The notes: generated from the letters alone by a model not told the origin. A stretch of 64,000 bases of DNA from IMGVR_UViG_3300042473_001540:124001-188000; one strand, 5' to 3'; positions 3,941 through 26,981 are shown, numbered from the stretch's first letter. Numbers and translations: made by a program.

Positions 3941-3963
3941 GAGCTCCATAACAGGAGGCACAT

Positions 3964-4855: not shown

Positions 4856-4888
4856 TAACTCTTTGAAACGTTTTTGACTGGCAGGGTG

Positions 4889-4917
4889 TTGACAGCACAA
4901 AAACTACGCGCTATATA
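4889..4917 (+). promoter_or_regulatory. sigma70-type early promoter
   Basis: TTGACA-N17-TATATA, AAGGAG SD downstream. Confidence 0.5.
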
Positions 4918-8017: not shown

Positions 8018-8041
8018 CAAACCCAAAAATTCTGCTACAGT
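8014..8041 (+). promoter_or_regulatory. sigma70-type early promoter
   Basis: TTGACA-N16-TACAGT (GC before -10); AAGGAG SD before ATG 8064. Confidence 0.55.
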
Positions 8042-8063
8042 AAGGCTCAGAAGGAGACATCAT

Positions 8064-9789: not shown

Positions 9790-9790
9790 C

Positions 9791-10099: not shown

Positions 10100-10431
10100 A
10101 CGAGATTCGCTGGCAAGACATCTTTGTGGAGAAGGTGCATGAGTTTGAAAAAGTGCTGCCCATCTACAGGTGGTGCCTAGAAAGCTGGGGCAAAGAAGTG
10201 CCCGCCAATGCCTACACGTGGTTCAGGGTAGTGTTCTCAGCTGGTGAGCCCGGTGGTTGGACCAACAGTTGGCGAGACAGTGGCTTCAGCTTGATACACA
10301 TGAACAGCAAGGTAATTGAAGACATCAAAGAGGACGCGGGAAGCTATCCGGACCTACTGAAACGCTTCCCACTCTATGTTCTATTTTATAGCCAAGAGGC
10401 AGTAACTGAGTTTCGGTTGACCTGGCAATAA
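10090..10431 (+). CDS. small Trp-rich phage protein, paralog 4
   Basis: RWCLESWG...YTWF...FYSQEAVTEFRLTW pattern. Confidence 0.65.
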   Translation: MAINEIRWQDIFVEKVHEFEKVLPIYRWCLESWGKEVPANAYTWFRVVFSAGEPGGWTNSWRDSGFSLIHMNSKVIEDIKEDAGSYPDLLKRFPLYVLFYSQEAVTEFRLTWQ

Positions 10432-10485
10432 GTTTTGACGCAACAGCAAACTATGTTAAAAAAGTGTGTAACACAGGAGACTCTG

Positions 10486-11511
10486 GTGACTGACAAGCGA
10501 ATTGGTTTTTGCTGTAAATTTGTATCTGAAACAGAGTTCAAAGACAAGAAGAGCGCAGCAGAGTGGCACAGCCTCTACAACACAAAAGGCACAACTGTAA
10601 CCTCACTGGAAAAGCTCACACGTACACAAGCCATTGACAAGCTGTGTGGCATTGTGCGCTACAACACTGAGGTACTTATGAGGCAGTTTCAGCTTGTAGG
10701 CAGTTGGCCACAAGAACTCCGAATGATGCGAATTGGCAGTGAGATTCTCCCTGCTCGCACACACGCCAATTGGAGCTCTGCCTATCAAGAATCTGTGATG
10801 ATTGAAGCACTGCGCGGATTTGGGGAGGTAGGCAAACTAGCACGTGACTTCGACATTCGACTCAGCACGCATCCTGGACAGTTCACTATGCTTGTGAGTC
10901 ATGAGCCCGAGGTGGTGGAGCGTGCTATTGAAGACCTCGAGTACCACTCGGAGATTTTCCGGCTCATGGGCTTTGATGGAAGTGATCAGCGACAGGAGAT
11001 CAACATCCATGGTGGTGCCCGTCGAGACGATTTCCTTGATTACTTTCAACACAGCTTTGCTCGGCTGAGCAGTGACACAAAGCAATGGCTGAGTGTGGAG
11101 AATGATGAGTACAGTTACGGTCTCGATCATCTCTTGCCCTTGAAAGACAAGGTGAAGATCTGTCTCGACATCAACCACTACTGGATTCATCAAGGAACGT
11201 ATCTCAGTCCAGATGACCCAAGGCTGACCCAGGTGATTGAAAGTTGGCGTGGTGCACGTCCAGAAATTCATGTGGCTTGGCCGCACGAAGATGTACTTCC
11301 CTCCCACAGCAACACAACCAGGCCAGACATTGCGTTGCTCGAGTCAAGTGGTATCAAACGAAGCAAGCTGCGTGCCCACAGCAAGCGACCTTGGAACAAG
11401 GCGTTGAACAGCTACTGTCTTGAGTTTTGGGATAGGATGGATCTCATGTGCGAAGCCAAGGAAAAGAATTTAGCTGCTAGAGAATTATATGACTATTCTC
11501 AAACACTATAA
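10486..11511 (+). CDS. uvsE: UV-damage endonuclease (UvsE/UVDE)
   Basis: RIGFCC, RLSTHPGQF, INIHGG, VENDE, LDINHYW, RAHS, CEAKEK; GTG start after AGGAG. Confidence 0.9.
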   Translation: MTDKRIGFCCKFVSETEFKDKKSAAEWHSLYNTKGTTVTSLEKLTRTQAIDKLCGIVRYNTEVLMRQFQLVGSWPQELRMMRIGSEILPARTHANWSSAYQESVMIEALRGFGEVGKLARDFDIRLSTHPGQFTMLVSHEPEVVERAIEDLEYHSEIFRLMGFDGSDQRQEINIHGGARRDDFLDYFQHSFARLSSDTKQWLSVENDEYSYGLDHLLPLKDKVKICLDINHYWIHQGTYLSPDDPRLTQVIESWRGARPEIHVAWPHEDVLPSHSNTTRPDIALLESSGIKRSKLRAHSKRPWNKALNSYCLEFWDRMDLMCEAKEKNLAARELYDYSQTL

Positions 11512-11514
11512 ATA
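11507..11514 (+). promoter_or_regulatory. T4-type late promoter
   Basis: Exact TATAAATA upstream of speD. Confidence 0.6.
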
Positions 11515-11554
11515 ACCACTTAAACCATCTTTTATACCAAGGAGCACATATGAG

Positions 11555-11935
11555 ATGAAAAACCTACCAAGCTGGGGCAAACATTTGGTCGTCGATGCAG
11601 CAGGGTGCAATGAAGCCATCAACGACAAAGAGACTGTAACCAAATGGGTTGACCAACTGGTTAACGATATTGATATGATTGCATTTGGTCGACCAGAGAT
11701 TCATTGGTTCGCAGACCACGATGTTACTAAAGCTGGTATCAGTGCTGTGCAACTTATTACTACATCGGCTATTGTATGTCATTTTGTACCTCACACTTGG
11801 ACACTTCACCTAGACGTGTTTTCTTGTAAGGACTTTGATTCCAATATTGTGCTCAAGCTGTTGCAGGAATATTTTGGGGTGAAAGCTTGGAATATCAAGG
11901 AGTTTGAACGCGAAGCTCCTGACCTCAATAGCTGA
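11555..11935 (+). CDS. speD: S-adenosylmethionine decarboxylase proenzyme (phage type)
   Basis: WGKHLVVD, GISAVQLITTSAIVCH (self-cleavage region; ES replaced by TS), LDVFSCK. Confidence 0.8.
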   Translation: MKNLPSWGKHLVVDAAGCNEAINDKETVTKWVDQLVNDIDMIAFGRPEIHWFADHDVTKAGISAVQLITTSAIVCHFVPHTWTLHLDVFSCKDFDSNIVLKLLQEYFGVKAWNIKEFEREAPDLNS

Positions 11936-11957
11936 ATTATATTATAAGGAAAAAGTA

Positions 11958-12545
11958 ATGCTTATAGGTTATGCAAGGACTAGCACACATGAACAATCCG
12001 CAAGTCTAGAATCTCAAATTGCAGCATTGCAACAGGCTGGGTGTGAAAAAATCTTCGCAGAACAAACCAGTGCTGTTGGAAGTAGACCGCAGCTCACCGC
12101 AGCGATGTCATATATTCGTGAAAAAGATGTGTTTATGGTTACACGAGTAGACCGGTTGGCTCGAAGTACATCAGATCTTCTCAAAATTGTAGAAGATTTG
12201 GAAAAGCGAGAAATTGGCCTAATAGTGCAGAGCATGAACGGCATGGAATTAGACACACGAAATGCAATATCCAAGTTGATGCTGACTGTTTTAGGCGCAG
12301 TAGCAGAGTTTGAGCGTCAAATGATGCTTGAGCGGCAGCGAGAGGGCATCGCCAAGGCAAAGGCAGAGCGGCGCTACAAGGGCAGGGCGCCAACAGCACG
12401 CAGGCAGCTGGCTGAGATTCAGTCACTAAAATCCCAAGGGGTTGGTGCAAGTGAGATCGCAAGGCGGCTTAAGATCAATAGGTCAAGCGTTTATCGAGTG
12501 TTGGCACCAAACTCTGTTATCAGCCCACTGGTTCAAGGTAAGTAA
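11958..12545 (+). CDS. serine recombinase, resolvase/invertase family with C-terminal HTH
   Basis: IGYARTST, RVDRLARS, AEFER..MLERQREGI, HTH ending RSSVYR. Confidence 0.92.
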   Translation: MLIGYARTSTHEQSASLESQIAALQQAGCEKIFAEQTSAVGSRPQLTAAMSYIREKDVFMVTRVDRLARSTSDLLKIVEDLEKREIGLIVQSMNGMELDTRNAISKLMLTVLGAVAEFERQMMLERQREGIAKAKAERRYKGRAPTARRQLAEIQSLKSQGVGASEIARRLKINRSSVYRVLAPNSVISPLVQGK

Positions 12546-12564
12546 GTATAATGGCCACTGGTAC

Positions 12565-12837
12565 CTAATCTTCAACTATCAACAATTTCAAATCCCCTGA
12601 GCCCTTCAATAGTCTATGGAAGGTGTCTCGGGGGATTCTCACGACATCGCCGGGCTTGAGATTGCAGGGCATGCAGTTGTCCATTTGAAGTTGCCAACCA
12701 TTACCCTCAACCACTGTAATAAGTCTGTGACAGTGATCTCGATGCCACACTAGCTCATGAGAATCTACAGATTGAAAGAATGTTCTTTCCAAACCTTGAA
12801 TTTGTTTCTTGTCACTGTAGGGATTCATTACCACCAT
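12565..12837 (-). CDS. small cupin-like phage protein
   Basis: ELVWHRD...GWQLQMDN...IP...FHRLLKG. Confidence 0.7.
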   Translation of the reverse strand: MVVMNPYSDKKQIQGLERTFFQSVDSHELVWHRDHCHRLITVVEGNGWQLQMDNCMPCNLKPGDVVRIPRDTFHRLLKGSGDLKLLIVED

Positions 12838-13406
12838 TTGGCACTAATTGGACTCAATCCCAAGGATTTAGTATAGCGGGGAACTCTACACGCCCAGTAT
12901 CCAGCCTTCATTTTGTCTGTTTTTTGTTCACAGTTGTGACGAGAAGCAAACGCTTTGCGTCGTTTGGGATCGCGGATTTTAACACTCAAACCTGACACAT
13001 CACCAAAGGCAATTTTTTTGACCCTGCCTGTTTTGGGATTCTTGACGTAGACGTAATACTTTTTAGGACCGCCTCTCTTGGGCTTGTTAAGCTCAACAGC
13101 TTTTCCTTGATACTCAGCCTCATCAAGACTTTCTGGAGTTTCAAAAATACAATCCAACGGAACCATTCTGCCTTCATACACACCAAACGTGCCTAAATCA
13201 CTCTCAATCATGTCCTGGTCAAGAGCGTGTTCCAAGAGTATATCTCCACAAGAAACACGACGTCGCATCTCACAAAAAAACTCAAACCAAGCTGGGCTGT
13301 GAATACGGAATATGTTATCAACTAGCGGAACTTTGTTATCCTGGTGCCATTGAATGGCTTGATTTACACTTTCATTCAAAGGTTGCGTAAGGTCTTGAAT
13401 TTTCAT
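12828..13406 (-). CDS. two-module probable virion internal protein with basic C-terminal module
   Basis: MKIQDL..PLNES start, internal SLDEA, KKYYVYVKNP...FASRHNC...YWAC; CTAAATA upstream (13437-13443, minus). Confidence 0.7.
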   Translation of the reverse strand: MKIQDLTQPLNESVNQAIQWHQDNKVPLVDNIFRIHSPAWFEFFCEMRRRVSCGDILLEHALDQDMIESDLGTFGVYEGRMVPLDCIFETPESLDEAEYQGKAVELNKPKRGGPKKYYVYVKNPKTGRVKKIAFGDVSGLSVKIRDPKRRKAFASRHNCEQKTDKMKAGYWACRVPRYTKSLGLSPISAKWW

Positions 13407-13439: not shown

Positions 13440-14171
13440 TTAGAAACCAAAATGCTCTTGTAAGATCTTGTCTATTTTGTGCAGTTGTTGAGTTACAGGC
13501 CCTAATAGGCAGTGAGTCCAGTGAGAAGGAACTATCGGAGGCAAGTAGCCGTCAATGTCCCGATTTAAATTTAACACGTTGATTACACTAGGACAATCCA
13601 ACACTTTTGCGAAGTTATCAACAGGAACAACTGAGCCTGATGTTCCAATACACAGGAACAGGCTTTTGTCTGTAAGGCTGTCCAGTGTGTTGTAGAGATA
13701 TTGGTATTTGGGTGCTGGTTCACCAAACAACACTACCGCAGGCTTGACATCAGTCAGGCTTTGGCAATTGGGACAACCTAGGGAGATGTTGTATCGAGTG
13801 TAGCCAATATTCCAAACATGGCCACAGTTTTCGCATTGCATTTCATCCAGCTGTCCGTGAACATGCACAACAGGGATGCAACCAGCCTCCTCTAGCAAGA
13901 GGTCTGCATTTTGAGTTATCACTGTTGCACTGTATTTTCTCTGCCATTCTGCCACCTGTTTGTGGGCGGCGTTTGGCTGAAACTTCAGAAGCATTTCCCG
14001 TAAGTCGCTGTGAAATTCATTTACAATTTGAAAGTTTTGTCGCCAAGTGGCGTAATTACTGTAAACCAATGGATCATAACGGCTCCATAAACCTTCGCTA
14101 TCTTCTCTAAATGTGGGGATGCCGCTTTCAGCACTCAAACCAGCGCCGCTAAAAATCAATAATTGGGTCAT
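13440..14171 (-). CDS. Sir2/CobB-family NAD-dependent protein deacylase
   Basis: GAGLSAESGIPTFR, TQNAD, HVHG, two CxxC, KPAVVLFGE, GTSG. Confidence 0.92.
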   Translation of the reverse strand: MTQLLIFSGAGLSAESGIPTFREDSEGLWSRYDPLVYSNYATWRQNFQIVNEFHSDLREMLLKFQPNAAHKQVAEWQRKYSATVITQNADLLLEEAGCIPVVHVHGQLDEMQCENCGHVWNIGYTRYNISLGCPNCQSLTDVKPAVVLFGEPAPKYQYLYNTLDSLTDKSLFLCIGTSGSVVPVDNFAKVLDCPSVINVLNLNRDIDGYLPPIVPSHWTHCLLGPVTQQLHKIDKILQEHFGF

Positions 14172-14267
14172 AATTTTGATTATGCAACAAATTTCTGGAG
14201 GGTTGCAATCCAATTCTCATGTTTACTGCCTTTGTATTGTGCTCACTGTCCAGACAATAAATATACT

Positions 14268-14906
14268 ATGCCATATTTGAATCATAATATCCCCGTTTTA
14301 ACATGCCTAATACGTAACCAATACCTTTACAATCACACCAAAGGCCACGGCGAGTTCACTCCCTGTGATGTACACAGTGTCGCAAGTATGGAGAAACGCA
14401 CGCCTTTATTTGAAGCATTTTTGGAAAATGGAGTGAACTGGACACGTCGACCCATAACTGCTTTTTGTTGGCGTAATGATGCACCAGTAAGACCACTTGC
14501 AGAACATGTTTATTGGGACTGTTTCAGTCATTATATTGATGTGCAGGTCCGGCAACGCATGGCGGGGTTAAGGGCTACGTTGTTGGTTTACACTGGGGAA
14601 CGTCGTCAAGGACAATACTGTATGACTTTAGACTGGGGTTGGGAAAACTCTGCTTTTACTGACACCAATTTCAGTGAAACGCCTGAACACAAATGCGCGC
14701 ATTTGTTCAAAATGGATGAAGGAAACTATTATCTTTATCCCAACAATAGAATCATTTGGCATGACAATGCTTGGGTGAAAAATCCTATAACCAGTAATCC
14801 TGGGTATCAAATAGACATGACAGTCTACAGTGTGGAGAACGCTGTGGACTTTTATACAGATGACAGCTATATGACACATGTGGAGCCTGTAAATGAAGCT
14901 GGTTGA
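14268..14906 (+). CDS. conserved phage hypothetical protein
   Basis: MPYLNHNIP..., WDCFS, SETPEHKC, YPNNRIIW; AATAAATA box just upstream. Confidence 0.75.
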   Translation: MPYLNHNIPVLTCLIRNQYLYNHTKGHGEFTPCDVHSVASMEKRTPLFEAFLENGVNWTRRPITAFCWRNDAPVRPLAEHVYWDCFSHYIDVQVRQRMAGLRATLLVYTGERRQGQYCMTLDWGWENSAFTDTNFSETPEHKCAHLFKMDEGNYYLYPNNRIIWHDNAWVKNPITSNPGYQIDMTVYSVENAVDFYTDDSYMTHVEPVNEAG

Positions 14907-17900
14907 TATTTTGGAAAACAAGGAGGACCAACAGAATCAAAAACCCAGTGTGTTCAGCCAGTGGGAAGACACTGACCCAAAGAATGACAAGCCGGAAGAG
15001 TCAAAAAATAATCCCAGTGAACTCTATCATAGCACTATACTAGACAATGCGCCTAATATCCTGCAATCAGGATATATAACAACCTCTATCTACAAAGATC
15101 CAGCCAAGGATATAGTGTTTGATTCTCGCTCTACAACACCCCATACATCACCAACTATAGCTGTTCTCACTTCTTGTGGGACACTGATGCAAACCTACAA
15201 CGAACAAATTTCTCGCCAGCTAACGACGGCAAGCAGTCAACTGGGAACGCAAAGCAAAGCCTATCGAGCCTTGCGTGCCATCAGTCACGTTTTGGAATCA
15301 CAGAAGCTTTTTGAAAACGATCCACAACTAGGTAACAACAGCATTTGGCTCTACACTGAAGGTTGCCAAAGTGCATTGCACATACTGCTCGACAACAAGA
15401 CAGCAAAAATCACTTGGTTAGGTAGTTTGAATGGCACTGGTAGGCAACTTTTGGAGCAGGGGTTAGCACAAAGCCAGAAACAAGGTGCCTTACTCGCTGT
15501 TGTGAAACCCATCTGGAACAGCCACAAATTTTATGAGAAGATGGGATTTCAAGATCAAGGAACTGGTTATTGGAACTTACCTCTTGAGGAATCAGCTAAT
15601 CAACTGGATCGCGCAGATCTAGAAGACTTATTGGGTGCAATCACATATGAGCAAGAAGAGATTAACGACGCCAGCTATGATGCTGCGGGACCAAAGTATG
15701 AAAAACTTGACAAGGATTTCAAAGCCTTAGAGGCTGTTGCTTATGTGGTTAAAAATAACTTACGAGCACTTGACAATCCCAACTTGGGAAAAAATAGCAT
15801 TTTCCTCTATAACTATACCCCAGATCTAGGCGTGTTCAGTGTAACTGCAATACATGTGGTGATTGAAAATCAAGTGGCGCATGTGAAATGGTTGGGCAGT
15901 TATGACAACAAACCTGGTGCTGGCAAAGCGTTGATGTTACAAGCCTTGACTATCGCAAAGAACAAAGGGGCCACCAAGAGCGTCGTAGAGGCCAAATGGG
16001 AAAGCGAAGGCTTTTATCACAAGCTGGGTTACGATGTGGAGAACAGAGGATCAAACAACCCATTTACAGGCACCAGTTTAGTCCAAATGGGAAAGAAGTT
16101 GGAAGAAGCTTGGACTGATGAAGACCAGCGTATGGTTCACAAAAATCCCACAATTCAAGATTTGAAAAGGTTGGCACGCAACAACAAGTATCACAGTGCC
16201 AGATTTGTGATCTACAAAGATGGCAGTGTTGTGGCTGCGGATAGCGAACATTATACTCACCACAGTGCTGCACCTGCCATGGGCGCTTGGGCTTTGAGAG
16301 GGTATGTGCAATACTTGGGTGGCAACGACTATGCCTATCGCAGCATGGAAGTCTACAGTCCCAAAAGTGTTGACCATCCTCTTTTCCGCAAGTGGGAATC
16401 TAGTGGTATAGAGAATGGCAATCCCTCTGTTGTTGAGGAAAAATGGACCAAAAAGTATAAGAAGAGTATCAACTGCTCTAATCCTCAAGGGTTCAGCCAA
16501 CGTGCTCACTGTGCTGCTAGACGCAAACGACAAAAGGGCGGAAAGACAACTAGCAAGCCCTTGAATGAAAACAATAACGTAGAAATACACAACTATAAAA
16601 AGCTGGATCGCATCTTAGTTGCATTGTGTAACCTAGTTGACACCAGACGAAAGAAAAACCCTGACAAATACGGATGGGTAGCCGCAGGGTTGTTGGATCC
16701 CCGCAACCGTCTTGTAATAGGTTTCAGCACATTTGCCAATGACAAATGGTATCATGCTGAACGATTGGCTATGAGGGCTTATCGTAAAAAATACGGAAGC
16801 ATACCTGATGGCTGTATAATTGTAACCACATGCAGTCCATGCAGCGAGCAGATGCCAAGATATGGTGAAAGTTGTACTGACCTAATCAACAAGAGTCCTG
16901 TCAAAAAAGTCTATTGCGGCTACTCTGATACAACTCAATCCCAAAGTCAACGCACTTTCAATATTATGGTTACTGCTGATACAAACATACGAGAACGGTG
17001 CCAAAAATTTGCTGAAAACTTCATGGATTGGGAAGCGCAATATTTGGATGAAAGCTTGCGTGATTGGTTCAAACAAAAATGGGTGCGATTTGGGACAGAT
17101 GGCAAGATCAGAGGCGACTGTGCTAGAGGCAGTGAAGGCGAAGGCAAGCCCAAATGCCTGCCACAGCGGAAGGCTTGGGCACTGGGCAAGAAAAAACGTG
17201 CAACTGCTGCTAGGCGCAAGCGTAGAGAAGATCCCAATCCTGAACGTGAAGGCAAGGCCCGGAACGTAGCCACAAAAGAAAGTGTTGGCTCTACAAAATT
17301 GGGAGATCTCTGCACTATCAAAACTAATTTTCCTGATGCTGACTTTTGGCTTGTGCGACGCAGTGATAGAACAAATGTGGGCACACCAGCCAAAGAATTC
17401 AGTCCCTATCATATTGGAATCAAAGTCACAGCTACTGAACAGCTGATGCCAGAATATCTCTACTATATGATGATGCATCTCCACAACCAAGGCTATTGGA
17501 ACAGTCGAAGCATGGGCATGAGCAATCTTGTGCACATACGCACAGAAGATGTGAAAAACATACAACTGGCTTTGACAGAGCATGAGCTGAAAGAAAACTC
17601 CAGTTGTCCACATTGCGGAGGCCAAATGGTTAACTACTCTATGCTCAGTGAAAAACAAGATGCCTGCTACTACAAAGTCAAGAGTCGCTACAAAGTTTGG
17701 CCCAGTGCCTATGCCAGCGGTGCATTAGTGCAGTGCAGGAAAAAGGGTGCAAAAAACTGGGGCAAGAGCAAGACAAATGAAAGCATAAGCATTGATCAAC
17801 AAGAGGAACATGGAGGTCTCGAAGCCTACATAACTGATACATCTACCCCACAATTGGTCAATTATCTTGCAAGTGAAAATGCACCCGCCGACCTTGCAGA

Positions 17901-18621
17901 AAAATTGCAACGCAGATACAAAACAATAGCTGTGTTCAAAAACATATGGGTCGAGGAAGATCATCAAGGGTCTGGAGTAGGTAGCTGGATTTTAGAGGCT
18001 GGTATTGGGGATGCAATAGACAACCAGGCTCATGCTGTCATTCTCACTGCTGTCTCAGATGATCCCAAAAGACAATCACAACTTGAGAAATGGTATAAGT
18101 CTTATGACTTCAAAGAAATAGCTCGCAGTTCAACTGGGTATCCTGTGATGTTACTAGATTTAAACAAAGACCAGGTCTCAGAAGCTGCCCCGTGGCTCGG
18201 GCAGGGAGATGAGCCACTGCCCACTAAACTCTATCATGTCACAAGAACAAGAAACCGTTTGAGCATACGCCAGAGAGGACTTGTTCCCAAAACAAAGGAA
18301 CATGATCATATATTGCGACAACCAGGTGTGTTTCTGTTTGAAACTTTTGAACAAGCTGAAGATTGGGCTTACTATTGGAGTCAAGATGAGGGCGAGAGTA
18401 TGGATATATGGGAAATCAAGGTTCAAGATCCCAATGATCTAACTCCTGATCCAGCATTGGATATTCAGCACGATTACGATGCATGGGTCATCTACAAGCC
18501 AATTCCTGCAGCCAATGTGAGGCTGAAATTTACGCAACGCTGGCCGGAACCTTGGGGAAAGCCTACTACAACGGTGAAAAAAATCCGCAACCTTGAAGAA
18601 GATCCTAATGAAACTGAATGA
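14893..18621 (+). CDS. mosaic multidomain protein/polyprotein (3 GNAT-like, deaminase, HsdS-like, ART-like and small basic modules)
   Basis: GNAT motifs (GTGRQLL..FYEKMGF; GAGKALM..FYHKLGY; HQGSGVG..WYKSYDF), HAE..SPC deaminase, KLYHVT..GLVP..GVFL ART-like; modules bounded by LxE. Confidence 0.8.
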   Translation: MKLVDILENKEDQQNQKPSVFSQWEDTDPKNDKPEESKNNPSELYHSTILDNAPNILQSGYITTSIYKDPAKDIVFDSRSTTPHTSPTIAVLTSCGTLMQTYNEQISRQLTTASSQLGTQSKAYRALRAISHVLESQKLFENDPQLGNNSIWLYTEGCQSALHILLDNKTAKITWLGSLNGTGRQLLEQGLAQSQKQGALLAVVKPIWNSHKFYEKMGFQDQGTGYWNLPLEESANQLDRADLEDLLGAITYEQEEINDASYDAAGPKYEKLDKDFKALEAVAYVVKNNLRALDNPNLGKNSIFLYNYTPDLGVFSVTAIHVVIENQVAHVKWLGSYDNKPGAGKALMLQALTIAKNKGATKSVVEAKWESEGFYHKLGYDVENRGSNNPFTGTSLVQMGKKLEEAWTDEDQRMVHKNPTIQDLKRLARNNKYHSARFVIYKDGSVVAADSEHYTHHSAAPAMGAWALRGYVQYLGGNDYAYRSMEVYSPKSVDHPLFRKWESSGIENGNPSVVEEKWTKKYKKSINCSNPQGFSQRAHCAARRKRQKGGKTTSKPLNENNNVEIHNYKKLDRILVALCNLVDTRRKKNPDKYGWVAAGLLDPRNRLVIGFSTFANDKWYHAERLAMRAYRKKYGSIPDGCIIVTTCSPCSEQMPRYGESCTDLINKSPVKKVYCGYSDTTQSQSQRTFNIMVTADTNIRERCQKFAENFMDWEAQYLDESLRDWFKQKWVRFGTDGKIRGDCARGSEGEGKPKCLPQRKAWALGKKKRATAARRKRREDPNPEREGKARNVATKESVGSTKLGDLCTIKTNFPDADFWLVRRSDRTNVGTPAKEFSPYHIGIKVTATEQLMPEYLYYMMMHLHNQGYWNSRSMGMSNLVHIRTEDVKNIQLALTEHELKENSSCPHCGGQMVNYSMLSEKQDACYYKVKSRYKVWPSAYASGALVQCRKKGAKNWGKSKTNESISIDQQEEHGGLEAYITDTSTPQLVNYLASENAPADLAEKLQRRYKTIAVFKNIWVEEDHQGSGVGSWILEAGIGDAIDNQAHAVILTAVSDDPKRQSQLEKWYKSYDFKEIARSSTGYPVMLLDLNKDQVSEAAPWLGQGDEPLPTKLYHVTRTRNRLSIRQRGLVPKTKEHDHILRQPGVFLFETFEQAEDWAYYWSQDEGESMDIWEIKVQDPNDLTPDPALDIQHDYDAWVIYKPIPAANVRLKFTQRWPEPWGKPTTTVKKIRNLEEDPNETE

Positions 18622-21502
18622 CCTATTGAACAAGCCTACCAGTAGCGTAGCTGAGCTGGCTAAAAAATACAAAGTGTCAACAGACTCTGTGGAGAAACAG
18701 CTGGCACAGGGCATCAAAGTGGAGATGGAACACACCCGGTTGCGGAGTGTGGCGCGAGAAATAGCCTTGGATCACTTGGGTGAGGATCTTAACTATTACA
18801 AGAAATTGAGCAAACTTGAGAAAAAGCCTGCTCAAGAAGCTCTTCTGATAGAGCTGTTTGCCCTGCTAAATGAAGTAAAAATCGACAATGTGAGTGGCAT
18901 TGGGGAAGTGCCTGACAATAAGAATGTGGATTATCTTGGCTTGAGAGTCGCGATGAAGCCCAGTGTATTTTTGAAATTGGCTAGCCCTTTGTCAAGAGAA
19001 CATGCTGGGAGTGTGGATTATATCAAACAGCAACTAGATCAAGGGCAGGGAATGGCCAGTCCTTGGCTGGTCTTAGACATACCAATAGAATGGGAAAAAG
19101 GTCGTTATAATAAATCCGCAAGAGTAATTGGGCACGAAGGCCGCAACAGAATGTATGCGGTCCTAGAAACTGAAGGCGATGCACCTGTTGAAACTCATTT
19201 GTTTTTTGTCGGTGGATTGCGTGCTAGGCACATCAAACCTGAATGGATTGAAGCACTCAACCTGCGTCTTGTACCACAGAGAGCAAACACTAGTGTATCT
19301 GGCCCGTTTTTTGAACTGCTGTTAAAGACTCAAAAAAGTCTCTCAGAAGAAAATGAAAACAAAAGAGACACATACCGTGTAACCTGGAGAGGTAGATTGG
19401 GCGAATATGATCCCAATTATTTTGACATCAAAAGTGACCCACTTGAAGACGATGATGGCAAAGTCATCGCCGTAAAAGATCAGCTTGTTCCCAAATCTCA
19501 TTTGCGTGCCAATTTAAACATAACTCCAAATCCCAACCTAGTGTATAGGGGCATGAGTAATCATGAATTTCAAAATATCAAAAAAACAGGAGTGATACAA
19601 AGCAAAGGCGAGTATAACTTGGCTGGGCAACAGGGCTTAACCTATTTTTCAACTGAACCCAGGTCAGCTGAAACTTATGCTCATAGTTTTGCACCATGGA
19701 ATCAAAAAGCCAACTGGGACAATCCAGCATGGGTAATTGCAGTGCCCAAACCTGATGAATCAAAAATTGTGCATGTGCAAGGCACAGGATCACATGAAGT
19801 GGGAGTCAAAGGCTCTATACCAGCGAATCAAATAAGGGAGATATACCGAGGAAAGGTTGTAGAATACGATCCTGGTGTGCACAACCAAGTTGCACCATCA
19901 GCATGGCTGCATTGGGAGAAAATGCCTGTTGATACATTGTTAACAGAGCGCAAAGGTGCGCCTGGCACTCTCAAATCCAAAATCACCAGACTGTATGGCG
20001 GAGGTGTCACATGTGACAAAACACAAAAACTCAAAACACGCCAGGGTGCTACAACTCTAGACAAACGCCAAGCCAACTGGTTTCAAAACAAACATTGCGG
20101 CGGAGCAACTAGAGTTGATGAAATCATAAGTGGTGAGCATATTCCAGGCGATTGGAAAAAATATGGAAGCGGCGACGCAGAAATGTTTGAAACAGAGTTT
20201 GATCTTCAAGGATATAAGATCACAATAAGTGTGAGTCGGGATTGGGCCCAATCTGGTGCCTATGTGTTGATGAAGAAAAACATAGAGGCTGGAGCAAACC
20301 TGGTTGGCAGAGAAATAATATTCAGGGTAGATGGCGAAACTGATCCAACAGGCTTACTAGGCACAGGTGCAGCGAATGTAATTTCAATTGTTGTAGGAAA
20401 AATCATAGGACTACTACAAAATATAGAATGGGACTATTTGGTCTTCGCAGGTGCTGGGGACAGTAGACAAAGAGTATATACTAAAATATTGAGTCAGATA
20501 TCTCCAGGACTTGATTCAGAGCCAATGCAATTTGGAGATTGGTTCCTGCTGATCAAAAACCATTTGTTGGCAGCAAAATCTCAAGAGCTGGATGAAGTTT
20601 TTAAAGGCAAGCCACTTCCTGGAGATTGGCAATCAATAAAGGGCGGTTCAACCCACTACACTGAATTTGAATTTGCTGGCAGTGAAGTGCAAATAGCAGT
20701 CGTAAAAGACGCTTCTTATGAGCTTCAAACTATCTTGCAAAAGCAAGTGCCAGAAAACTGGGTTGGATATGAAGTGTCCTTCTCTGTAGATCACAGCATC
20801 TCTGTAACAGGTATGTTTGACCAAAAAAGTGCCCAATTATTTGATTTGATTATACGAAAACTCAAATGGTTTTTCCAGACCCACAGCTGGGACTACATCA
20901 ACTTCAGTGGGGATGAGCGCAGCCGCAACAAGCTCTATCTCCGGCTGGCAAAACAGTTGGCACCTGCTGATAGCACAGTGTTGCACACTAACAAAAGCTT
21001 TGCAATTGTCAAGCAGGACAAGCTTGCATCATTCACTAACTTGGACGAAAGTTTAAGTTACAAAGGTTTGCGTCCTGGAGCAAATATTTGGTATGAGCCT
21101 GGCATGCAATATTCCCAATATAATTTATATCCAGGCAAAAGTATTGTGGGCCAGCGAGTATACCATATGACCAATAAGCTTACAAGTATAATAAAGTCAG
21201 GCGGACTGAAACCAAAATATGATGAGACTGGTGCTAGAGAATTTGGCCGATATAGCACTGTGGAATATCCTTTCACTCCAGTTATTGCTATATTTTTTGA
21301 TGTTGGTGAGCATGATTGGTTTGGCAAATACATCTTAAGTTGGGAAATAACACCTGAGGATAAAACTGCACGAGCATATATGCCAGTAGATACCATGCAG
21401 CCTTCAGATAGAGATAATTTGCTGCCCAATTGTCAGGTAACACCTGTAAGTATTGATAGGATTACTATCACAGATCTCAAAGGAAACCTTATAAAAGTAT
21501 GA
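18608..21502 (+). CDS. mosaic multidomain protein/polyprotein (EMEH/DH helical module, ParB-like, 2 ART-like, 2 SR-x-x-L/V-Y modules)
   Basis: GIKVEMEH..IALDHLGE, GHEGRNR, VYRGMS..YFST..HEV, VYHMT..GLKP; modules bounded by LxE. Confidence 0.78.
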   Translation: MKLNDLLNKPTSSVAELAKKYKVSTDSVEKQLAQGIKVEMEHTRLRSVAREIALDHLGEDLNYYKKLSKLEKKPAQEALLIELFALLNEVKIDNVSGIGEVPDNKNVDYLGLRVAMKPSVFLKLASPLSREHAGSVDYIKQQLDQGQGMASPWLVLDIPIEWEKGRYNKSARVIGHEGRNRMYAVLETEGDAPVETHLFFVGGLRARHIKPEWIEALNLRLVPQRANTSVSGPFFELLLKTQKSLSEENENKRDTYRVTWRGRLGEYDPNYFDIKSDPLEDDDGKVIAVKDQLVPKSHLRANLNITPNPNLVYRGMSNHEFQNIKKTGVIQSKGEYNLAGQQGLTYFSTEPRSAETYAHSFAPWNQKANWDNPAWVIAVPKPDESKIVHVQGTGSHEVGVKGSIPANQIREIYRGKVVEYDPGVHNQVAPSAWLHWEKMPVDTLLTERKGAPGTLKSKITRLYGGGVTCDKTQKLKTRQGATTLDKRQANWFQNKHCGGATRVDEIISGEHIPGDWKKYGSGDAEMFETEFDLQGYKITISVSRDWAQSGAYVLMKKNIEAGANLVGREIIFRVDGETDPTGLLGTGAANVISIVVGKIIGLLQNIEWDYLVFAGAGDSRQRVYTKILSQISPGLDSEPMQFGDWFLLIKNHLLAAKSQELDEVFKGKPLPGDWQSIKGGSTHYTEFEFAGSEVQIAVVKDASYELQTILQKQVPENWVGYEVSFSVDHSISVTGMFDQKSAQLFDLIIRKLKWFFQTHSWDYINFSGDERSRNKLYLRLAKQLAPADSTVLHTNKSFAIVKQDKLASFTNLDESLSYKGLRPGANIWYEPGMQYSQYNLYPGKSIVGQRVYHMTNKLTSIIKSGGLKPKYDETGAREFGRYSTVEYPFTPVIAIFFDVGEHDWFGKYILSWEITPEDKTARAYMPVDTMQPSDRDNLLPNCQVTPVSIDRITITDLKGNLIKV

Positions 21503-22614
21503 GAATTTACCATTTAGTGCCCTTAAAGAAGTTGCTAGAAGCTTATCAGCCATTGACAACCAAATGGCAACAAGACAATGTGGGCTCAGTTTCAAGATAT
21601 ATTACAAGCTTTGAGTATGATGACCATTTAGTCGAACAAAGACTTACTCAAGATAAAAATCAAAAAGACTTACAGGATGCATTGGCTGCCAGTGATTTAG
21701 AGCCCAATCCACAAGCCAAGGGCTATGTTTGGTTATGGACAGTGGATGGGGAAATAGAACAAACTGGCACAATGGGCCTTAAGGCCATACCCTTGTGGAA
21801 AGAATTGGTGCGACGCCTCTTTGGTTGGCTTGGATCTCATGAATGGGACTACTTGACTTTTATTGGTGGACGCGGCAGCAGGAACAAGCTCTATAGCGCA
21901 TTGGGTCAAATGTTGGCGCAGAGAGCTGGTGCCAAAGTATATTTTGATTTTGACACAAGTGACTTTGTTGTATATAAGCCCAGTGCAATAGTTCAACCAA
22001 AATTGCAAGAGGCTTTTGATTACCAACTTCCCCGGGATAAATGGAAGATAAAAACAGAAGGCGACAGCTATATTGATTTTTTGTTTGAAATTGATGGCAA
22101 CGAATACGAGCTTCGAATGTCTCGATTGCAAGAGCCTCAGAAGAGGGGTATTTACGAGGTGGAATTTAGGCACACAGAGTATGGCATGGACATAAGTGGC
22201 ACAGGTTCAGCCTTTAAAGTCTTCAGTGCTGTGTTTCAACTTCTCAAGTATGCTATTGATCATCAAAAAACCTTACCTGTAAATGGACTTTGGTTCCAGG
22301 CTTGGGCCCCGAGCAGGAAAAAGCGTTATAAGAGTATGGCACCAAAATTAGCAAGACATCTGGGTTGGACTTGGGTAACCAAGCAAGAGAGTTTTCCCTA
22401 CTCTCTCTCGCCAGGAACAGATGGCTACTTGATTCTCAAACCCAGTCTTGGCGAAACAGCTGGTGTGGGCAAGATAGTTAAAGGTGTGAACACTACCACC
22501 GATGTGGGACCTGATGCTGTTCAAAAACAAGCCCGGAAATTTCTCAACAAAGTCACAGCAGGAGGAGTTCCTCCTCAAACTCAAAGCAATGGCAAATTTC
22601 CCTCGGTTAAATAA
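21499..22614 (+). CDS. mosaic protein with two SR-x-x-x-Y modules and a C-terminal peptide module
   Basis: SRNKLY and SRKKRY modules paralogous to those upstream; LLE, LQE, LGE boundaries. Confidence 0.75.
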   Translation: MRIYHLVPLKKLLEAYQPLTTKWQQDNVGSVSRYITSFEYDDHLVEQRLTQDKNQKDLQDALAASDLEPNPQAKGYVWLWTVDGEIEQTGTMGLKAIPLWKELVRRLFGWLGSHEWDYLTFIGGRGSRNKLYSALGQMLAQRAGAKVYFDFDTSDFVVYKPSAIVQPKLQEAFDYQLPRDKWKIKTEGDSYIDFLFEIDGNEYELRMSRLQEPQKRGIYEVEFRHTEYGMDISGTGSAFKVFSAVFQLLKYAIDHQKTLPVNGLWFQAWAPSRKKRYKSMAPKLARHLGWTWVTKQESFPYSLSPGTDGYLILKPSLGETAGVGKIVKGVNTTTDVGPDAVQKQARKFLNKVTAGGVPPQTQSNGKFPSVK

Positions 22615-22620: not shown

Positions 22621-23616
22621 ATGGCAACTTTGTATAGTTTTGGTATGGATCCCACACGGTGGTACAGCAGGGCATTATATGCCTTCTCTACCAATGAATT
22701 AGGCTGGACTACAGGCAATAGTCCAGTCAATGGACTGGGCAGCATACAATCCATGGCGTATGGAAACAATACGTGGGTTGGTGCTACAAATTTTGGAGAC
22801 TTCACAGTAAGTGGTGATGGTGTAAATTGGTATTCCTACACTCCTGAAAACAAAAGTTGGCTTGTTAACAAAATCACATGGGGACAAGGATTGTTCACAG
22901 TTGTGGGACATGAAAAAAACTTCAGTAACCTTGCAGAAACTGGATTTGTCGCAGTGTCTGGAAATGGTGGTCCAGCAACTTGGGTCAGAAAATTTGTCAG
23001 TTATCAAGAACCCATGACTTTGTTTGATATCAAACACTTGGGCCTAGGAAAATGGATTGCTGTGGGCTGCACAAATCATCTGCGACAGCCTGTGGTAATC
23101 TATAGTGAAGACAACACTGACTCTTGGACAAGAATACTACTTCCAGATATTATCCCTGGCGGTATTTACAGTATTGAAGCCCACGTAGGAAGTAGTGTAA
23201 AAGTTTGGCTGGGCGGCAAAGGCTGGATAGCCTATACCAACGATTTTCAAACCACAAGCACAGAATGGACATTGTTTGATAATTTAAAAGATCAAGGCAA
23301 ATCCAAACCATTTACGCGGTTATTATACCGATCCACACTGGGCAAAGAAGCTATTGTTGCACTGTCAGGATCTACAGTTTGGTTCAACGACACAGCTTTG
23401 AATTGGCGGAGCACTACACAAGAGGGCTATAGATTCCAGGACGTAGCTAATTTCCAAAACCCCTTAACAAGCCAAGAGTCATTTAACTTTTCTGTTGGAG
23501 GCATGTTGAACCAGTACACTGGATTCAAAACTCCTTGGCAAGCCCAGAGCACACAAGAATTCTCCCTCATTGGATATAACAATGGAGTCCAAGCCAGCAG
23601 CCTTATTGTTGTTTGA
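22621..23616 (+). CDS. BNR/beta-propeller-like repeat protein, probably structural
   Basis: Repeats like AYGNNTWV..SGDGVNW, YSEDNTDSW; TTAAATA at 22607-22613. Confidence 0.6.
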   Translation: MATLYSFGMDPTRWYSRALYAFSTNELGWTTGNSPVNGLGSIQSMAYGNNTWVGATNFGDFTVSGDGVNWYSYTPENKSWLVNKITWGQGLFTVVGHEKNFSNLAETGFVAVSGNGGPATWVRKFVSYQEPMTLFDIKHLGLGKWIAVGCTNHLRQPVVIYSEDNTDSWTRILLPDIIPGGIYSIEAHVGSSVKVWLGGKGWIAYTNDFQTTSTEWTLFDNLKDQGKSKPFTRLLYRSTLGKEAIVALSGSTVWFNDTALNWRSTTQEGYRFQDVANFQNPLTSQESFNFSVGGMLNQYTGFKTPWQAQSTQEFSLIGYNNGVQASSLIVV

Positions 23617-23948: not shown

Positions 23949-24228
23949 GGCTGCACTCAAAGCAAGGATACATTTTTATAGATCTTTGACTCAAAGATCT
24001 AAATGGATTGTAATGTTTTTTTTGGAGATTTTAGGTACAGCCAGCATACTGCTGGCTGTCGCCGTTTAAGCCTTTCAAATATTACCTTTGAGCACATTGT
24101 ATTTGTTTTGGTTGTTTGGCAGTGTAGCCTTGACCATCAGCAGTATTTTGCGTAAGAATCTATTACTCGCTGTAATGATGTTGTTTTATACAGGGTTGAA
24201 TTTATATGGATTATGGAGTTTTGGATGA
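23938..24228 (+). pseudogene. small 3-TM membrane protein gene interrupted by one in-frame TAA (24067-24069)
   Basis: Frame reads ...MFFLEILGTASILLAVAV*AFQILPLSTLYLFWLFGS...LNLYGLWSFG*; final TGA overlaps the polymerase ATG (ATGA). Confidence 0.7.
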
Positions 24229-26981
24229 CGTATGTTGATGCTATTTTGGAGAAAGACAAACACTGTATTCAAGTTGTGGAGCGTGTAAACCACAAACGAG
24301 TCTACAACACATATCCCAGCAAATACGTAATGTATTTTCCCAGTGAGCGTGGAAAATACACTAGCATTTATGGTGAACGGCTGGATAAATTTGAAACCAA
24401 TCGTTGGGAAGAGTTTCAAAGAGAGTGTCGCTTGGTTCCAAAAACACAACAATATGAAAGTGATAGCAATCCCATTTTCCGTTGTTTTTATGAACATTAC
24501 AAAAATACAGCAAGTCCACAGTTGCATGTGGCGTTTTTTGACTTGGAAACTGATTTTGATCCTGATCGGGGCTTCTCGTCAACTGACGAGGCGTTCAATC
24601 CCATTACAGCAGTATCTGTATATTTGAGTTGGCTGGGCAAAAACTTTACTCTTGTCCTCAAACCCAAAACACTCACAGTAGAGCAAGCATCAGCAGTTGT
24701 GGACAAATTTGAAGACACTGTGCTGTGTAGCAATGAAACTGAGCTATTGGATGTGTTTCTCACCCTCATTGAGGATGCAGATGTTCTCACAGGTTGGAAT
24801 TCAGAGGGTTATGATATTCCCTATTTGCACAATCGTATCATTCAAATTTTGAGTAAGGAGCACACTAAAAGGCTGTGTCTCTGGAACAAATTTCCCAAGA
24901 AAAGGGAGTATGAAAGCTATGGCAAGCCCACTATTACTTTTGATCTAGTGGGCAGAGTCCATCTTGACTATCTGCAACTGTACCGCAAGCATACCTATCA
25001 CGAGATGCACAGTTATCGACTGGACTTTGTGGGCGAGTATGAAGTGGGCGACAAGAAGATAGCTTACGAAGGCAGCTTGGACAAGCTCTATAACGAAGAC
25101 TTTGAAAAGTTCATTGCCTATAACAGGCAAGACGTTATGCTGTTGGTGAAAATTGATCGCAAGCTGAAATTCATTGATCTAAGCAATGATCTAGCACACA
25201 CAAACGGAGTGTTGATCCAAACAACAATGGGGTCAGTACAGCTTATTGACAATGCCATTACTAACGAAGCACATGATCTTGGCTTATGTGTTCCTACTCG
25301 ACGTAGAGACAATCCTGAAATCATGAAAGACGATCAGGGTGAAGACATTGAGCCCAATGGTATTGCTGGTGCATATGTGGCTGACCCAGTTGAAGGCATG
25401 CACAAATGGATTGGCGGTGTAGACATCAACAGTCTATATCCCAGTGCTATTCGAAGTTTGAACATGAGCAAGGAAACAGTAGTGGGGCAAATCCGCCCTG
25501 TGGGTAATGATCGTTTGATTCAACACAGGATGCAAAAGGAAAAACGCACTTTTGCTGACAGTTGGAACGAGATGTTTGGCATTATTGAGTATAACCAAGT
25601 GATGAATAGGGAAATGGTTATGCTGACTGTGGACTTTGAAGACGGCACCACTGTGGAACTCAGTGCTGACGAACTGTATCAATGGATTTTTGAAAATCCC
25701 AAAAAGCAAATGACGCTCAGTGCCAATGGCACTATTTTTGATCTCAACAAGGAAGGTGTGGTACCAGGCTTGCTGGCCCGCTGGTATGGTGAGAGAAAGG
25801 AGTTGCAGGCAGAAGCCAAAGCATGTTTCAAAAAAGCTGATGAAGAACCTAATCCCTCTAAGAAGAGTGAGTATCAAGAAAAAGCTGATTTTTATGACAG
25901 AAGGCAGTTGATTAAGAAAATTTTGCTAAATTCACTTTATGGAGCTATCGGAAATTCTAGCTCATCGTGGTTTGACAACCGTATTGCACAAAGTACTACT
26001 TTAACAGGTAGATGTATCGTCAAACACATGGGTAGTAAGATCAATGAGGTAATATCAGGGAAATATCACTACAAAGGTGATGCTGTCATATATGGCGACA
26101 CCGACAGCATTTATTTTAGCGCATATCCAGTAATGAGCCAGCTTGAAGACTTCAAAAGCTTTGATTGGAGTCGTGAAGCAGTGGTGCAACTGTATGATCA
26201 AGTTGCAGACATCACTAACCAAAGCTTTCCTGGATTTATGAAACAGGCATTCAATGTACCTGAATCCAGGAGTGTGATCAAAGCTGGCCGTGAACTAGTA
26301 GCAAGCCATGGATTGTTCATTACCAAAAAACGGTATGCTGTGATGATCTACGACAAAGAAGGCAAGCGAAAGGATGTAGATGGCAAGCCAGGTGAGATCA
26401 AAGTTATGGGGCTTGATCTCAAGAGAAGTGATACACCAAAACCAGTCCAGGACTTCTTGAGTGAGATTTTAACTTTGGTTTTGACTGAGGTTGACAAAGA
26501 CAGCATTTTCACGCGCATCAAGGAGTTCCGCACAGAGTTCAGCCAATGGCCCAGCTGGGCAAAAGGCAGCCCCAAAAGGGTGAATAACCTTACTCAATAT
26601 GGCATGATTAAGAAAGCTCAGGAAAGCGTTGACCTCAACAAAGACACTGGGAAAAGAAAAACTATTCCGGGCCATGTCCTTGCGAGCCTAAACTGGAACC
26701 TATTGTGTGAGATCTACAACGATTATGGATCAATGCGAATTCAAGACGGGCAAAAGGTGATTGTCTGTAAGCTGAGATCAAACCCTTTGGGTATGACATC
26801 TGTTGCATACCCTGTAGATCAACTGTATCTTCCTGATTGGTTCAAGTCTATGCCTTTTGACAACGCTCTTATGGAGGCCACAATTTTGGACAAGAAACTG
26901 GAAAACTTGTTGGGTGTATTGCACTGGAATCTTGAAGATGCCAAAAACAACGAAACTTTTGACAGCATGTTTAGTTTTTGA
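24225..26981 (+). CDS. family B DNA polymerase (T4 gp43-like)
   Basis: ExoI FFDLET, ExoII GWNSEGYD, ExoIII YNRQDV; DINSLYPS, KILLNSLYG, YGDTDS, KKRY. Confidence 0.97.
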   Translation: MTYVDAILEKDKHCIQVVERVNHKRVYNTYPSKYVMYFPSERGKYTSIYGERLDKFETNRWEEFQRECRLVPKTQQYESDSNPIFRCFYEHYKNTASPQLHVAFFDLETDFDPDRGFSSTDEAFNPITAVSVYLSWLGKNFTLVLKPKTLTVEQASAVVDKFEDTVLCSNETELLDVFLTLIEDADVLTGWNSEGYDIPYLHNRIIQILSKEHTKRLCLWNKFPKKREYESYGKPTITFDLVGRVHLDYLQLYRKHTYHEMHSYRLDFVGEYEVGDKKIAYEGSLDKLYNEDFEKFIAYNRQDVMLLVKIDRKLKFIDLSNDLAHTNGVLIQTTMGSVQLIDNAITNEAHDLGLCVPTRRRDNPEIMKDDQGEDIEPNGIAGAYVADPVEGMHKWIGGVDINSLYPSAIRSLNMSKETVVGQIRPVGNDRLIQHRMQKEKRTFADSWNEMFGIIEYNQVMNREMVMLTVDFEDGTTVELSADELYQWIFENPKKQMTLSANGTIFDLNKEGVVPGLLARWYGERKELQAEAKACFKKADEEPNPSKKSEYQEKADFYDRRQLIKKILLNSLYGAIGNSSSSWFDNRIAQSTTLTGRCIVKHMGSKINEVISGKYHYKGDAVIYGDTDSIYFSAYPVMSQLEDFKSFDWSREAVVQLYDQVADITNQSFPGFMKQAFNVPESRSVIKAGRELVASHGLFITKKRYAVMIYDKEGKRKDVDGKPGEIKVMGLDLKRSDTPKPVQDFLSEILTLVLTEVDKDSIFTRIKEFRTEFSQWPSWAKGSPKRVNNLTQYGMIKKAQESVDLNKDTGKRKTIPGHVLASLNWNLLCEIYNDYGSMRIQDGQKVIVCKLRSNPLGMTSVAYPVDQLYLPDWFKSMPFDNALMEATILDKKLENLLGVLHWNLEDAKNNETFDSMFSF

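Follow-up and report, generated by a model that had tools for sequence, protein, structure and literature searches.

In an uncultured giant phage of the T4 type, three consecutive open reading frames (ORF1, ORF2 and ORF3) code for chains of unrelated modules that are joined, for the most part, directly behind a hydrophobic-x-Glu tripeptide. They lie in IMGVR_UViG_3300042473_001540:124001-188000, a stretch of 64,000 nucleotides (nt) referred to here as the window. Each chain opens with a short leader peptide, and a leader of the same type starts a fourth gene, which encodes a protein of 192 amino acids (aa) on the opposite strand. This pattern of modules, joints and leaders is almost certainly real. 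The best explanation is that the four genes are members of a mosaic-protein family of T4-superfamily phages that is very large and has as yet no name. It is reasonably likely that these proteins are targeted to the prohead core, cut by the head protease, packaged and injected.

The region was described in an earlier reading of the DNA alone (the sequence-only reading). The three ORFs are as that reading described them: all lie on the plus strand, with overlaps of 14 and 4 nt. It called them chains of unrelated modules, and comparison with related phages bears this out, as the relatives shuffle, delete, insert and split the modules.

Joints, leaders and module exchange

Several diverged versions of the cluster are present in IMG/VR. 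They differ by whole modules, and most of the differences start or stop directly after Glu. Modules of ORF1-3 are shuffled, fused or gene-initial in relatives, and x-x-Glu still stands in front of them. VVEE/KWTKKYKK of ORF1 (where the slash marks the joint) appears as MKLQELLDFNAANLEE/KWTKKYKK in related locus L030, MMLWEILDCHIADLEE/KWTKK in L026 and NLEETPLEE/KWTKK in L014. LGE/TAGVGK of ORF3 corresponds to VQE/VGGVGT in L030, where this tail module follows an ORF2-type module in a fusion. L030 also carries the ORF2 module of residues 248-447 behind an ORF1-type module, after QISE. In L014, the ORF1 modules are in an altered order, with x-x-Glu before each.

The third GNAT acetyltransferase of ORF1 behaves as a cassette. 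The window reads KTNE/SISID...DQVSE/AAPWLG, with a 134-aa GNAT module between the two joints, whereas L005, L030 and L026 read KTNE/AAPWLG. This insertion or deletion runs exactly from Glu to Glu. Together with the ORF2 module found behind an ORF1-type module in L030, it agrees with the earlier suggestion that new modules join the chain behind an LxE motif. Exchange of the cassette through a shared DNA repeat was considered and rejected: its ends share only Glu and the following Ala-Ala, which is too little to give this pattern without selection on the joint.

Relatives also split the chains into separate genes at the joints, each new gene opening with a short leader that ends in x-x-Glu directly before the module, as in MKLQELLDFNAANLEE/KWTKKYKK. 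LNE/VKIDN of ORF2 corresponds in this way to MKLWDFLQE/VKIDN, and the VKIDN module stands first, behind leaders of the MKLWDFLQE type, in genes of L027 and L014 and in about 25 database proteins. The ORF1 module of residues 406-516 likewise opens gene L014_9998 behind a leader (MKLLDLFE/ARFQ). Because the x-x-Glu leader replaces the joint at gene starts, the predicted mature N-terminus is the same whether a module is internal or first in its protein.

The placement of the joint motif was analysed statistically. All 21 tripeptides that the sequence-only reading took as joints (19 strong and two weak) are present in frame at the positions it assigned. ORF1-3 contain 46 [LIV]xE motifs in total, as compared to 32 +/- 4.9 in within-protein shuffles. 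Breakpoints were defined as the ends of BLASTP high-scoring segment pairs (HSPs) against related phages and merged to 17 clusters. The expected enrichment of [LIV]xE at boundaries is present: the motif lies within +/-3 aa of nine of the 17 clusters (2.8 expected, P=4e-4) and within +/-6 aa of 11 of them (4.3 expected, P=2e-4). The control tripeptides [LIV]x[D/K/Q/S] show no enrichment at these clusters. When 64 polyproteins are compared all-versus-all, the peak of HSP ends is exactly at Glu (85 versus a background of ~25) and that of HSP starts is at the Leu of LxE (92 versus ~20). The statement that nearly every boundary carries hydrophobic-x-Glu holds for most joints. It does not hold for the breakpoint at ORF1 residue 75, which has no Glu, or for TKE794 and TNE961, which are T-x-E. 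The Glu before the zinc-ribbon piece (ORF1 residue 902) is not kept in relatives.

The leaders are confined to this group of genes. Among the ORFs of 50 aa or more on the two strands of the window, only four open with the pattern M[KR][LIVM]x[DENQHS][LIFV], namely ORF1-3, whose N-termini had already been said to look alike, and the 192-aa gene, which was absent from the earlier reading. This fourth gene is also found, with the same leader, in L005, L027 and L014. Across 25 related loci, 28 of 678 ORFs have the pattern, and nearly all of them belong to this cluster; the pattern also starts almost all of the 40 database relatives of ORF2. Leaders include MKLVDILE in ORF1, MRIYHLVPLKKLLE in ORF3, and MKLWDFLQE, MKLQDLLQE and MKLLDLFE in relatives. 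The N-terminus of T4 IPII and IPIII is MKTYQEFIAE/A. Database proteins in which basic module 2 is N-terminal carry MKANEFVTE/, MRANEFVAE/ or MRAEEFINE/ directly before it, and these are closer to the T4 sequence than the ORF1-3 type is. The leaders thus suggest a resemblance to the T4 capsid targeting sequence, and a resemblance only, as 8-10 residues are too short to measure homology.

The family extends far beyond the related loci. A full HMMER scan with ORF1 residues 1-1200 gives 5901 matches among 50%-identity representatives, 631 of them at E-values below 1e-30. These strongest matches typically have three matched stretches, and the three basic modules of ORF1 are by far the most widespread parts. 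Basic module 2 is found at any position in hundreds of proteins of 196-1852 aa, with constant query boundaries (713-718 to 796-800). Glu at P1 with a hydrophobic residue at P3 precedes basic peptide 2 in 62/62 cases, peptide 1 in 31/31 and peptide 3 in 134/134 (227/227 together). A database-wide tally gives 2711 [LIVM]xE motifs, as compared to 1657 +/- 37 in shuffles. Many unrelated modules start behind one of two portable linkers, QLDE (108 occurrences) or GVAE (175 occurrences). In L015/L016, which represent a distant lineage, (Q)GVAE/ occurs at least eight times in one protein, between modules. Mosaic relatives carry GNAT, deaminase, DUF5661, PF18760 and ParB (PF02195) domains. In cyanophage S-RIM2 (NC_020859.1), a homolog of the basic modules is located in the structural gene cluster, between terS and a virion protein, and the neighbouring gene starts with MKSYKQFMSE/.

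Two polyproteins of L015 have further modules. The protein at 9713-13360, which has GVAE joints, contains a sigma-70 region-4-like helix-turn-helix module. Another, at 3438-4913, has at its end an HExxH zincin-like module, which may be a self-processing peptidase of the kind proposed for polyvalent proteins.

Two AlphaFold (AF2) models were made from alignments, covering ORF2 residues 81-964 and ORF1 residues 406-964; the alignments of ORF2 modules n3 and n7 are too shallow for a model. The models place the joints in predicted linkers between folded domains. Joints LSE245, LTE445, VDE503, LDE661 and LDE812 of ORF2 are in low-confidence segments or at domain ends, as are VEE514, LNE557, LDE718 and TKE794 of ORF1. 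The interior site IRE699 is within a long predicted helix. This difference between joints in linkers and a site inside a helix would explain how interior sites escape a protease.

Modules of the polyproteins

The genes and their modules are listed in Table 1. The three GNAT domains and the deaminase of ORF1 are domain assignments that stand. The deaminase is modelled by AF2 with a predicted local distance difference test (pLDDT) score of 94-98, and Foldseek matches it to RibD, TadA and dCMP deaminases (E-value: 3.5e-7). L030 lacks residues 1-74 of ORF1.

Table 1. Polyprotein genes of the window and their modules (res, residues; pI, isoelectric point; ART, ADP-ribosyltransferase).
Feature	Position	Strand	Description
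Fourth leader gene	12828-13406	-	192 aa; start MKIQDLTQPLNE; basic C-terminal module phrog_7595 (res 93-175) behind SLDE joint
ORF1	14893-18621	+	1242 aa; leader, 11 modules and 6-aa tail
ORF1 leader MKLVDILE	14893-14916	+	Likeness to T4 capsid targeting sequence
ORF1 res 9-233	14917-15591	+	N-terminal remnant with LYHST motif, then GNAT 1 (Pfam FR47/GNAT, res 187-227); end LEE
ORF1 res 234-405	15592-16107	+	GNAT 2 (Pfam Acetyltransf_10, res 342-402); end LEE
ORF1 res 406-516	16108-16440	+	Compact domain, family unassigned; AF2 pLDDT 88-97; end VVEE
ORF1 res 517-559	16441-16569	+	Basic peptide 1 (KWTKKYKK..., pI 10.9); end LNE
ORF1 res 560-720	16570-17052	+	Zinc deaminase domain (Pfam PF00383); end LDE
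ORF1 res 721-796	17053-17280	+	Basic peptide 2 (LRDWFKQKWVRF..., pI 10.8); end TKE
ORF1 res 797-901	17281-17595	+	Module of unassigned family, poorly modelled; ends LTE and LKE
ORF1 res 902-963	17596-17781	+	CPxCGG zinc-ribbon piece (end LSE), then basic peptide 3 (DACYYKVKSRYKVWPSAYASG..., pI 10.0); end TNE
ORF1 res 964-1097	17782-18183	+	GNAT 3 cassette, 134 aa (Pfam Acetyltransf_7); end VSE
ORF1 res 1098-1242	18184-18618	+	Candidate ART-like module (LYHVT...), end LEE, and tail DPNETE
ORF2	18593 (TTG, 969 aa) or 18608 (ATG, MKLNDLL, 964 aa) to 21502	+	7 modules
ORF2 res 1-89	18608-18874	+	Leader MKLNDLL and DUF5661 (Pfam PF18905), also in many other phage contigs; end LNE
ORF2 res 90-247	18875-19348	+	VKIDN module, family unassigned; AF2 core pLDDT 55-82; end LSE
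ORF2 res 248-447	19349-19948	+	Candidate ART-like module; end LTE
ORF2 res 448-505	19949-20122	+	Basic helical peptide (GAPGTLK..., pI 10.3); end VDE
ORF2 res 506-663 and 664-814	20123-21049	+	Two copies of repeated GNAT-like-fold domain (WDYLxFxG..SRxxLY); both end LDE
ORF2 res 815-964	21050-21499	+	Candidate ART-like module (VYHMT...); few homologs
ORF3	21499-22614	+	371 aa; leader MRIYHLVPLKKLLE; repeated-domain copies res 15-171 (end LQE) and 172-319 (end LGE); basic tail res 320-371, pI 10.4

ADP-ribosyltransferases were also named in the sequence-only reading. Three modules are kept as candidates on weak leads, since Pfam searches of single modules at E-values up to 1 give sub-threshold hints (TreTu_C, DUF7002). 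The last module of ORF1 (residues 1098-1242) has Atlas leads to PARP, Tox-ART-HYD1 and Arr clusters at 0.93-0.94 and a weak DUF7002 match; it is fused elsewhere in L014. ORF2 residues 248-447 have a weak TreTu_C match (E-value: 0.054) and Atlas ART leads at 0.87-0.90.

Residues 506-814 of ORF2 and 15-319 of ORF3 are four copies of one domain (internal paralogy). The ORF2 copies are modelled by AF2 with pLDDT 80-95, and Foldseek gives weak matches to GNAT-like domains. ORF1-3 also contain five very basic modules, with pI values of 10-10.9. The earlier description of all modules as effectors is overstated here, as these five peptides may instead bind DNA inside the head. No peptidase domain was found in ORF1-3 (Pfam, single modules at E-values up to 1), nor do these proteins contain an HExxH motif.

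Phage genome and gene neighbourhood

Identical copies of the window are found on contigs of up to 328,603 bp. No cultured phage matched the polyprotein region at the DNA level (megablast). The family-B DNA polymerase (24213-26981) has 46.7% identity to that of Agrobacterium phage Atu_ph07 and ~42% to those of Rak2-like giant phages, which are T4-superfamily phages. The polymerase is thus of the T4 type, and the phage also encodes a gp25 baseplate protein.

T4 gp21 cuts after L/I-x-E; in that phage a 10-residue targeting sequence is enough for a protein to be packaged, and both ends of Alt are trimmed (PMC9026906). The protease gene of the present phage was sought by a genome walk that covered -38 kb to +139.6 kb in window coordinates. 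This walk yielded genes for tail fibres, a 4017-aa giant protein, baseplate gp25, ClpA/DnaJ, RNA ligase and Thg1, and no portal, protease or capsid gene. Viral contigs were scanned with protease alignments (Rak2-like, Atu_ph07) and with the Atu_ph07 major capsid protein, and genome contigs and a collection of 5.8 billion proteins were searched as well; contigs of this phage are absent among the matches listed. The narrower scans gave 21 loci in viral contigs and nine in genome contigs. L094 and L108, two candidate proteases that stem from the same sampling project, were rejected, being located on other phages. In three Rak2-like phages, Atu_ph07 and two environmental loci, a PF03420 (Peptidase_S77) protease is encoded between the portal and major capsid genes. 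Among the database matches listed to the protease profile, 120/120 carry PF03420. S-RIM2 has a gp21 homolog (H94) in a second strain record, KX349239.1.

The neighbours of ORF1-3 encode a Sir2 protein, a phrog_3704 protein, DNA polymerase, ligase, glutathionylspermidine synthase and an invertase. The Sir2-family protein (13440-14213, minus strand; PF02146, E-value: 2.8e-37) is directly upstream of the cluster and divergent from it, and is a neighbour of the candidate NAD-using ART-like modules. The phrog_3704 protein (annotated as ferredoxin in PHROGs; 212 aa, 14268-14906, plus strand) has no leader and accompanies the polyprotein cluster. It is also encoded at L030 2794-3432 and, in L026 and L013, upstream of the gene that carries KWTKK; the two halves of a split ORF1 homolog flank it in L030 and L027. 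Directly 3' of ORF3 is a 331-aa ORF (22621-23616, plus strand) with no family match, which is kept beside the cluster in L005 and L030. Its repeated W/G-rich strand motifs suggest a beta-propeller. The glutathionylspermidine synthase and S-adenosylmethionine decarboxylase genes (7956-9215, 11555-11935) suggest phage-directed polyamine metabolism, which is possibly relevant to DNA-binding basic peptides.

Other genes are more distant. A 2376-aa, highly repetitive virion/tail-spike-like protein is encoded at 53598-60728 (minus strand). It matches phrog_23837, phrog_4636 and phrog_6002 over 11-22 stretches, has glycosyltransferases and a carbamoyltransferase encoded on its flanks, and may relate to the "hairy" fibres of Atu_ph07-like giant phages. 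At 61002-63319, an HNH/DUF2201-type protein (420 aa) adjoins a NUMOD3 homing endonuclease (343 aa), and further HNH genes follow to the right (L160, L161), so that this part is rich in mobile endonucleases. About 12-20 kb to the left of the window start (L166/L167) are six tandem paralogs of ~440 aa with RCC1/WD40_RLD repeats, beside Peptidase_S74 and Phage_tail_APC genes; these are probably a diversified tail-fibre or receptor-binding array. About 50-65 kb to the right of the window end (L178/L180/L258), a DUF8360 protein (1126 aa) and the gp25 baseplate protein precede the 4017-aa giant protein. Atu_ph07 has a matching three-gene arrangement (4449 aa, 1198 aa and 129 aa).

Proposed processing, alternatives and significance

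Several known systems share features with these proteins. The leader and the site type are shared by the T4 internal proteins IPI-III and Alt, which have a short N-terminal leader ending in hydrophobic-x-Glu, sites of the L/I-x-E type, variable and fast-evolving cargo (in T4 including an ADP-ribosyltransferase) and genes outside the head cluster. T4 cargo, however, is single-module and trimmed at one or both ends, whereas up to 12 unrelated modules with putative internal sites are found here. Replacing the Glu of the T4 site with Asp prevents processing and leaves targeting intact. ORF1-3 have no detectable homology to IPI-III. Multiple internal L/I-x-E sites are seen in the T4 core proteins gp22, gp67 and gp68, which are cut to small peptides, some of them retained in the head (PMC9026906); these are scaffold proteins, and neither mosaics nor enzyme chains. 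In the giant phages phiKZ, 201phi2-1 and SPN3US, many head-internal proteins are cut after Glu in a three-residue motif, S/A/G-x-E, with few other determinants (PMC9026906). Those phages belong to another lineage, their P3 residue differs from the L, I, V, M or T seen here, and the phiKZ substrates are not chains of swappable enzymes. Polyvalent proteins (Iyer, Burroughs, Anand, de Souza, Aravind 2017) are large, mosaic and presumably injected, with GNAT and ART domains (PMC5512222, PMC7824862, PMC9503650). An embedded metallopeptidase (MPTase) is proposed to free their domains, and packaging is marked by fusion to MuF/portal or by a late-gene context (PMC5512222). ORF1-3 resemble them in the many unrelated conflict-type domains per protein (three GNATs and a deaminase in ORF1), the extreme shuffling and the predicted delivery with DNA. 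They differ in lacking an MPTase and in having a targeting-type leader and Glu joints instead; the packaging context of polyvalent proteins (MuF/portal fusion, late virion gene neighbourhood) was not found for ORF1-3. No description of leader-bearing, Glu-jointed polyproteins was found in the searched literature, and the family is apparently an undescribed, widespread variant combining polyvalent effectors with T4 targeting-peptide cargo.

The model that we propose for ORF1-3 runs from the prohead to the infected cell. The leader (MK-hydrophobic-x-acidic-hydrophobic-hydrophobic-x-Glu) would dock the precursor on the prohead scaffolding core. A gp21-type serine protease (PF03420, Peptidase_S77) would then cut after Glu in L/I-x-E, removing the leader and cutting the chain at its exposed joints. 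About 20 pieces would be freed: three GNAT acetyltransferases, four GNAT-like domains, a nucleotide or nucleic-acid deaminase, three or four ART-like domains, DUF5661, several unassigned domains and five very basic peptides. These would remain associated with the packaged DNA and be delivered into the cell alongside it. The basic peptides may be internal peptides that bind DNA, and not effectors. Proteolytic joints are the best account of the data because Glu and a hydrophobic P3 are invariant whatever lies upstream, a removable leader stands at gene starts, the joints are predicted to be in exposed linkers and the consensus is lineage-specific. Both the site type and the leader are suggestive of the T4 paradigm, in which cargo is targeted to the prohead core and the head protease then cuts it.

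A number of observations weigh against this model. We infer cleavage, protease identity, virion location and injection from sequence, for ORF1-3 as for any member of the family. A search of ~178 kb of the ~328-kb genome (the window and ~114 kb of flanks) did not turn up its gp21-type protease. Metabolic and replication genes, and not head genes, surround the cluster. The T4-type late promoter TATAAATA has three matches in the window, none of them at the cluster, and this count is not above chance. Another 27 [LIV]xE motifs are inside modules, where folding would have to shield them, and conservation does not discriminate between the two classes: in close relatives Glu is retained at 30/36 junction LxE motifs and at 37/41 interior ones. 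Apart from ORF1 residue 75 and the T-x-E joints, boundaries without Glu include the n2/n4 joint of L014; one L014 joint reads RTT. The ORF2 leader, MKLNDLLNKP, has its first Glu only at VAE (residues 14-16). The LxE before the three basic modules could be merely the conserved first residues of the module.

The equal conservation of interior and junction LxE would fit ordinary polyvalent proteins that act, and possibly travel, intact, the hydrophobic-x-Glu motif being a favoured linker or helix cap and a tolerated recombination point. That class is established, GNAT and ART combinations included, and some known members, such as the N4 virion RNA polymerase, are packaged unprocessed (PMC5512222); some relatives of ORF1-3 have PF18760, PF02195 and GNAT domains. 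A passive linker would leave unexplained the Glu at P1 in 227/227 cases before three modules with variable upstream sequence, the short x-x-Glu leader before gene-initial modules and the extended consensus (QLDE or GVAE) that is a lineage's own. An intact 1242-aa chain of ~12 folded domains would also be awkward cargo through the tail, and we regard this explanation as unlikely. Similarly improbable is that these are cytoplasmic polyproteins, never packaged, whose Glu joints are cut by another protease (host, phage or autocatalytic) so that host-takeover enzymes are co-expressed, the leader having some other role. The position of the cluster among early/middle-type metabolic and replication genes (Sir2, ligase, DNA polymerase), with no head genes found in the 64-kb window (PHROGs scans of all larger ORFs), speaks for this explanation, and so does the protease missing from the part of the genome covered. 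However, T4 ipI-III and alt are likewise outside the T4 head gene cluster, and the cyanophage homolog is within structural genes. The HExxH zincin-like module of the L015 polyprotein, as proposed for self-processing polyvalent proteins, would favour autocatalysis, but ORF1-3 have neither a peptidase domain nor HExxH. A hydrophobic P3 with Glu at P1 is the specificity of gp21-type head proteases, and the leader has the length, the charge pattern and the x-x-Glu end of the T4 targeting peptide.

The basic modules might also be the point of the system. Here, the basic trio, perhaps with other pieces, would derive from the scaffold and serve as internal peptides, neutralising the charge of the DNA in a giant capsid, and the enzymes would be passengers or act in the head. 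The pI values of the five modules, the wide spread of the three basic modules of ORF1 (in S-RIM2 within the structural cluster) and the cutting of T4 core proteins to small internal peptides (PMC9026906) are in line with this. It leaves unaccounted for the GNAT, deaminase and ART-like enzymes and the rapid shuffling that is typical of host-directed effectors. As the main role of the family it is very doubtful, but it is compatible with the model of packaging, cutting and injection and does not exclude it.

A broader form of the model is possible, and we put it forward tentatively: T4-superfamily phages, among them many uncultured giant phages and cyanophages, may have a general plug-and-play payload system, in which any domain behind a leader or a hydrophobic-x-Glu joint would be packaged, released and injected. 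Cassettes would be exchanged at the joints, and the joint consensus (LxE, QLDE or GVAE) would co-evolve with protease specificity.

If the joints are cleavage sites, these phages have a previously unrecognised route by which to assemble, diversify and deliver a multi-enzyme arsenal using one precursor, one targeting peptide and a housekeeping head protease. As candidates for early enzymes with anti-host or anti-defence roles, the GNAT, deaminase and ART-like modules form a defined set. The model, if true, would assign a function to "hypothetical" mosaic proteins that number in the thousands among metagenomes and marine cyanophages, and would give a simple sequence rule for predicting phage proteins that enter the host with the DNA. 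It would also extend the T4 principle of expression, packaging and processing to natural polyproteins.

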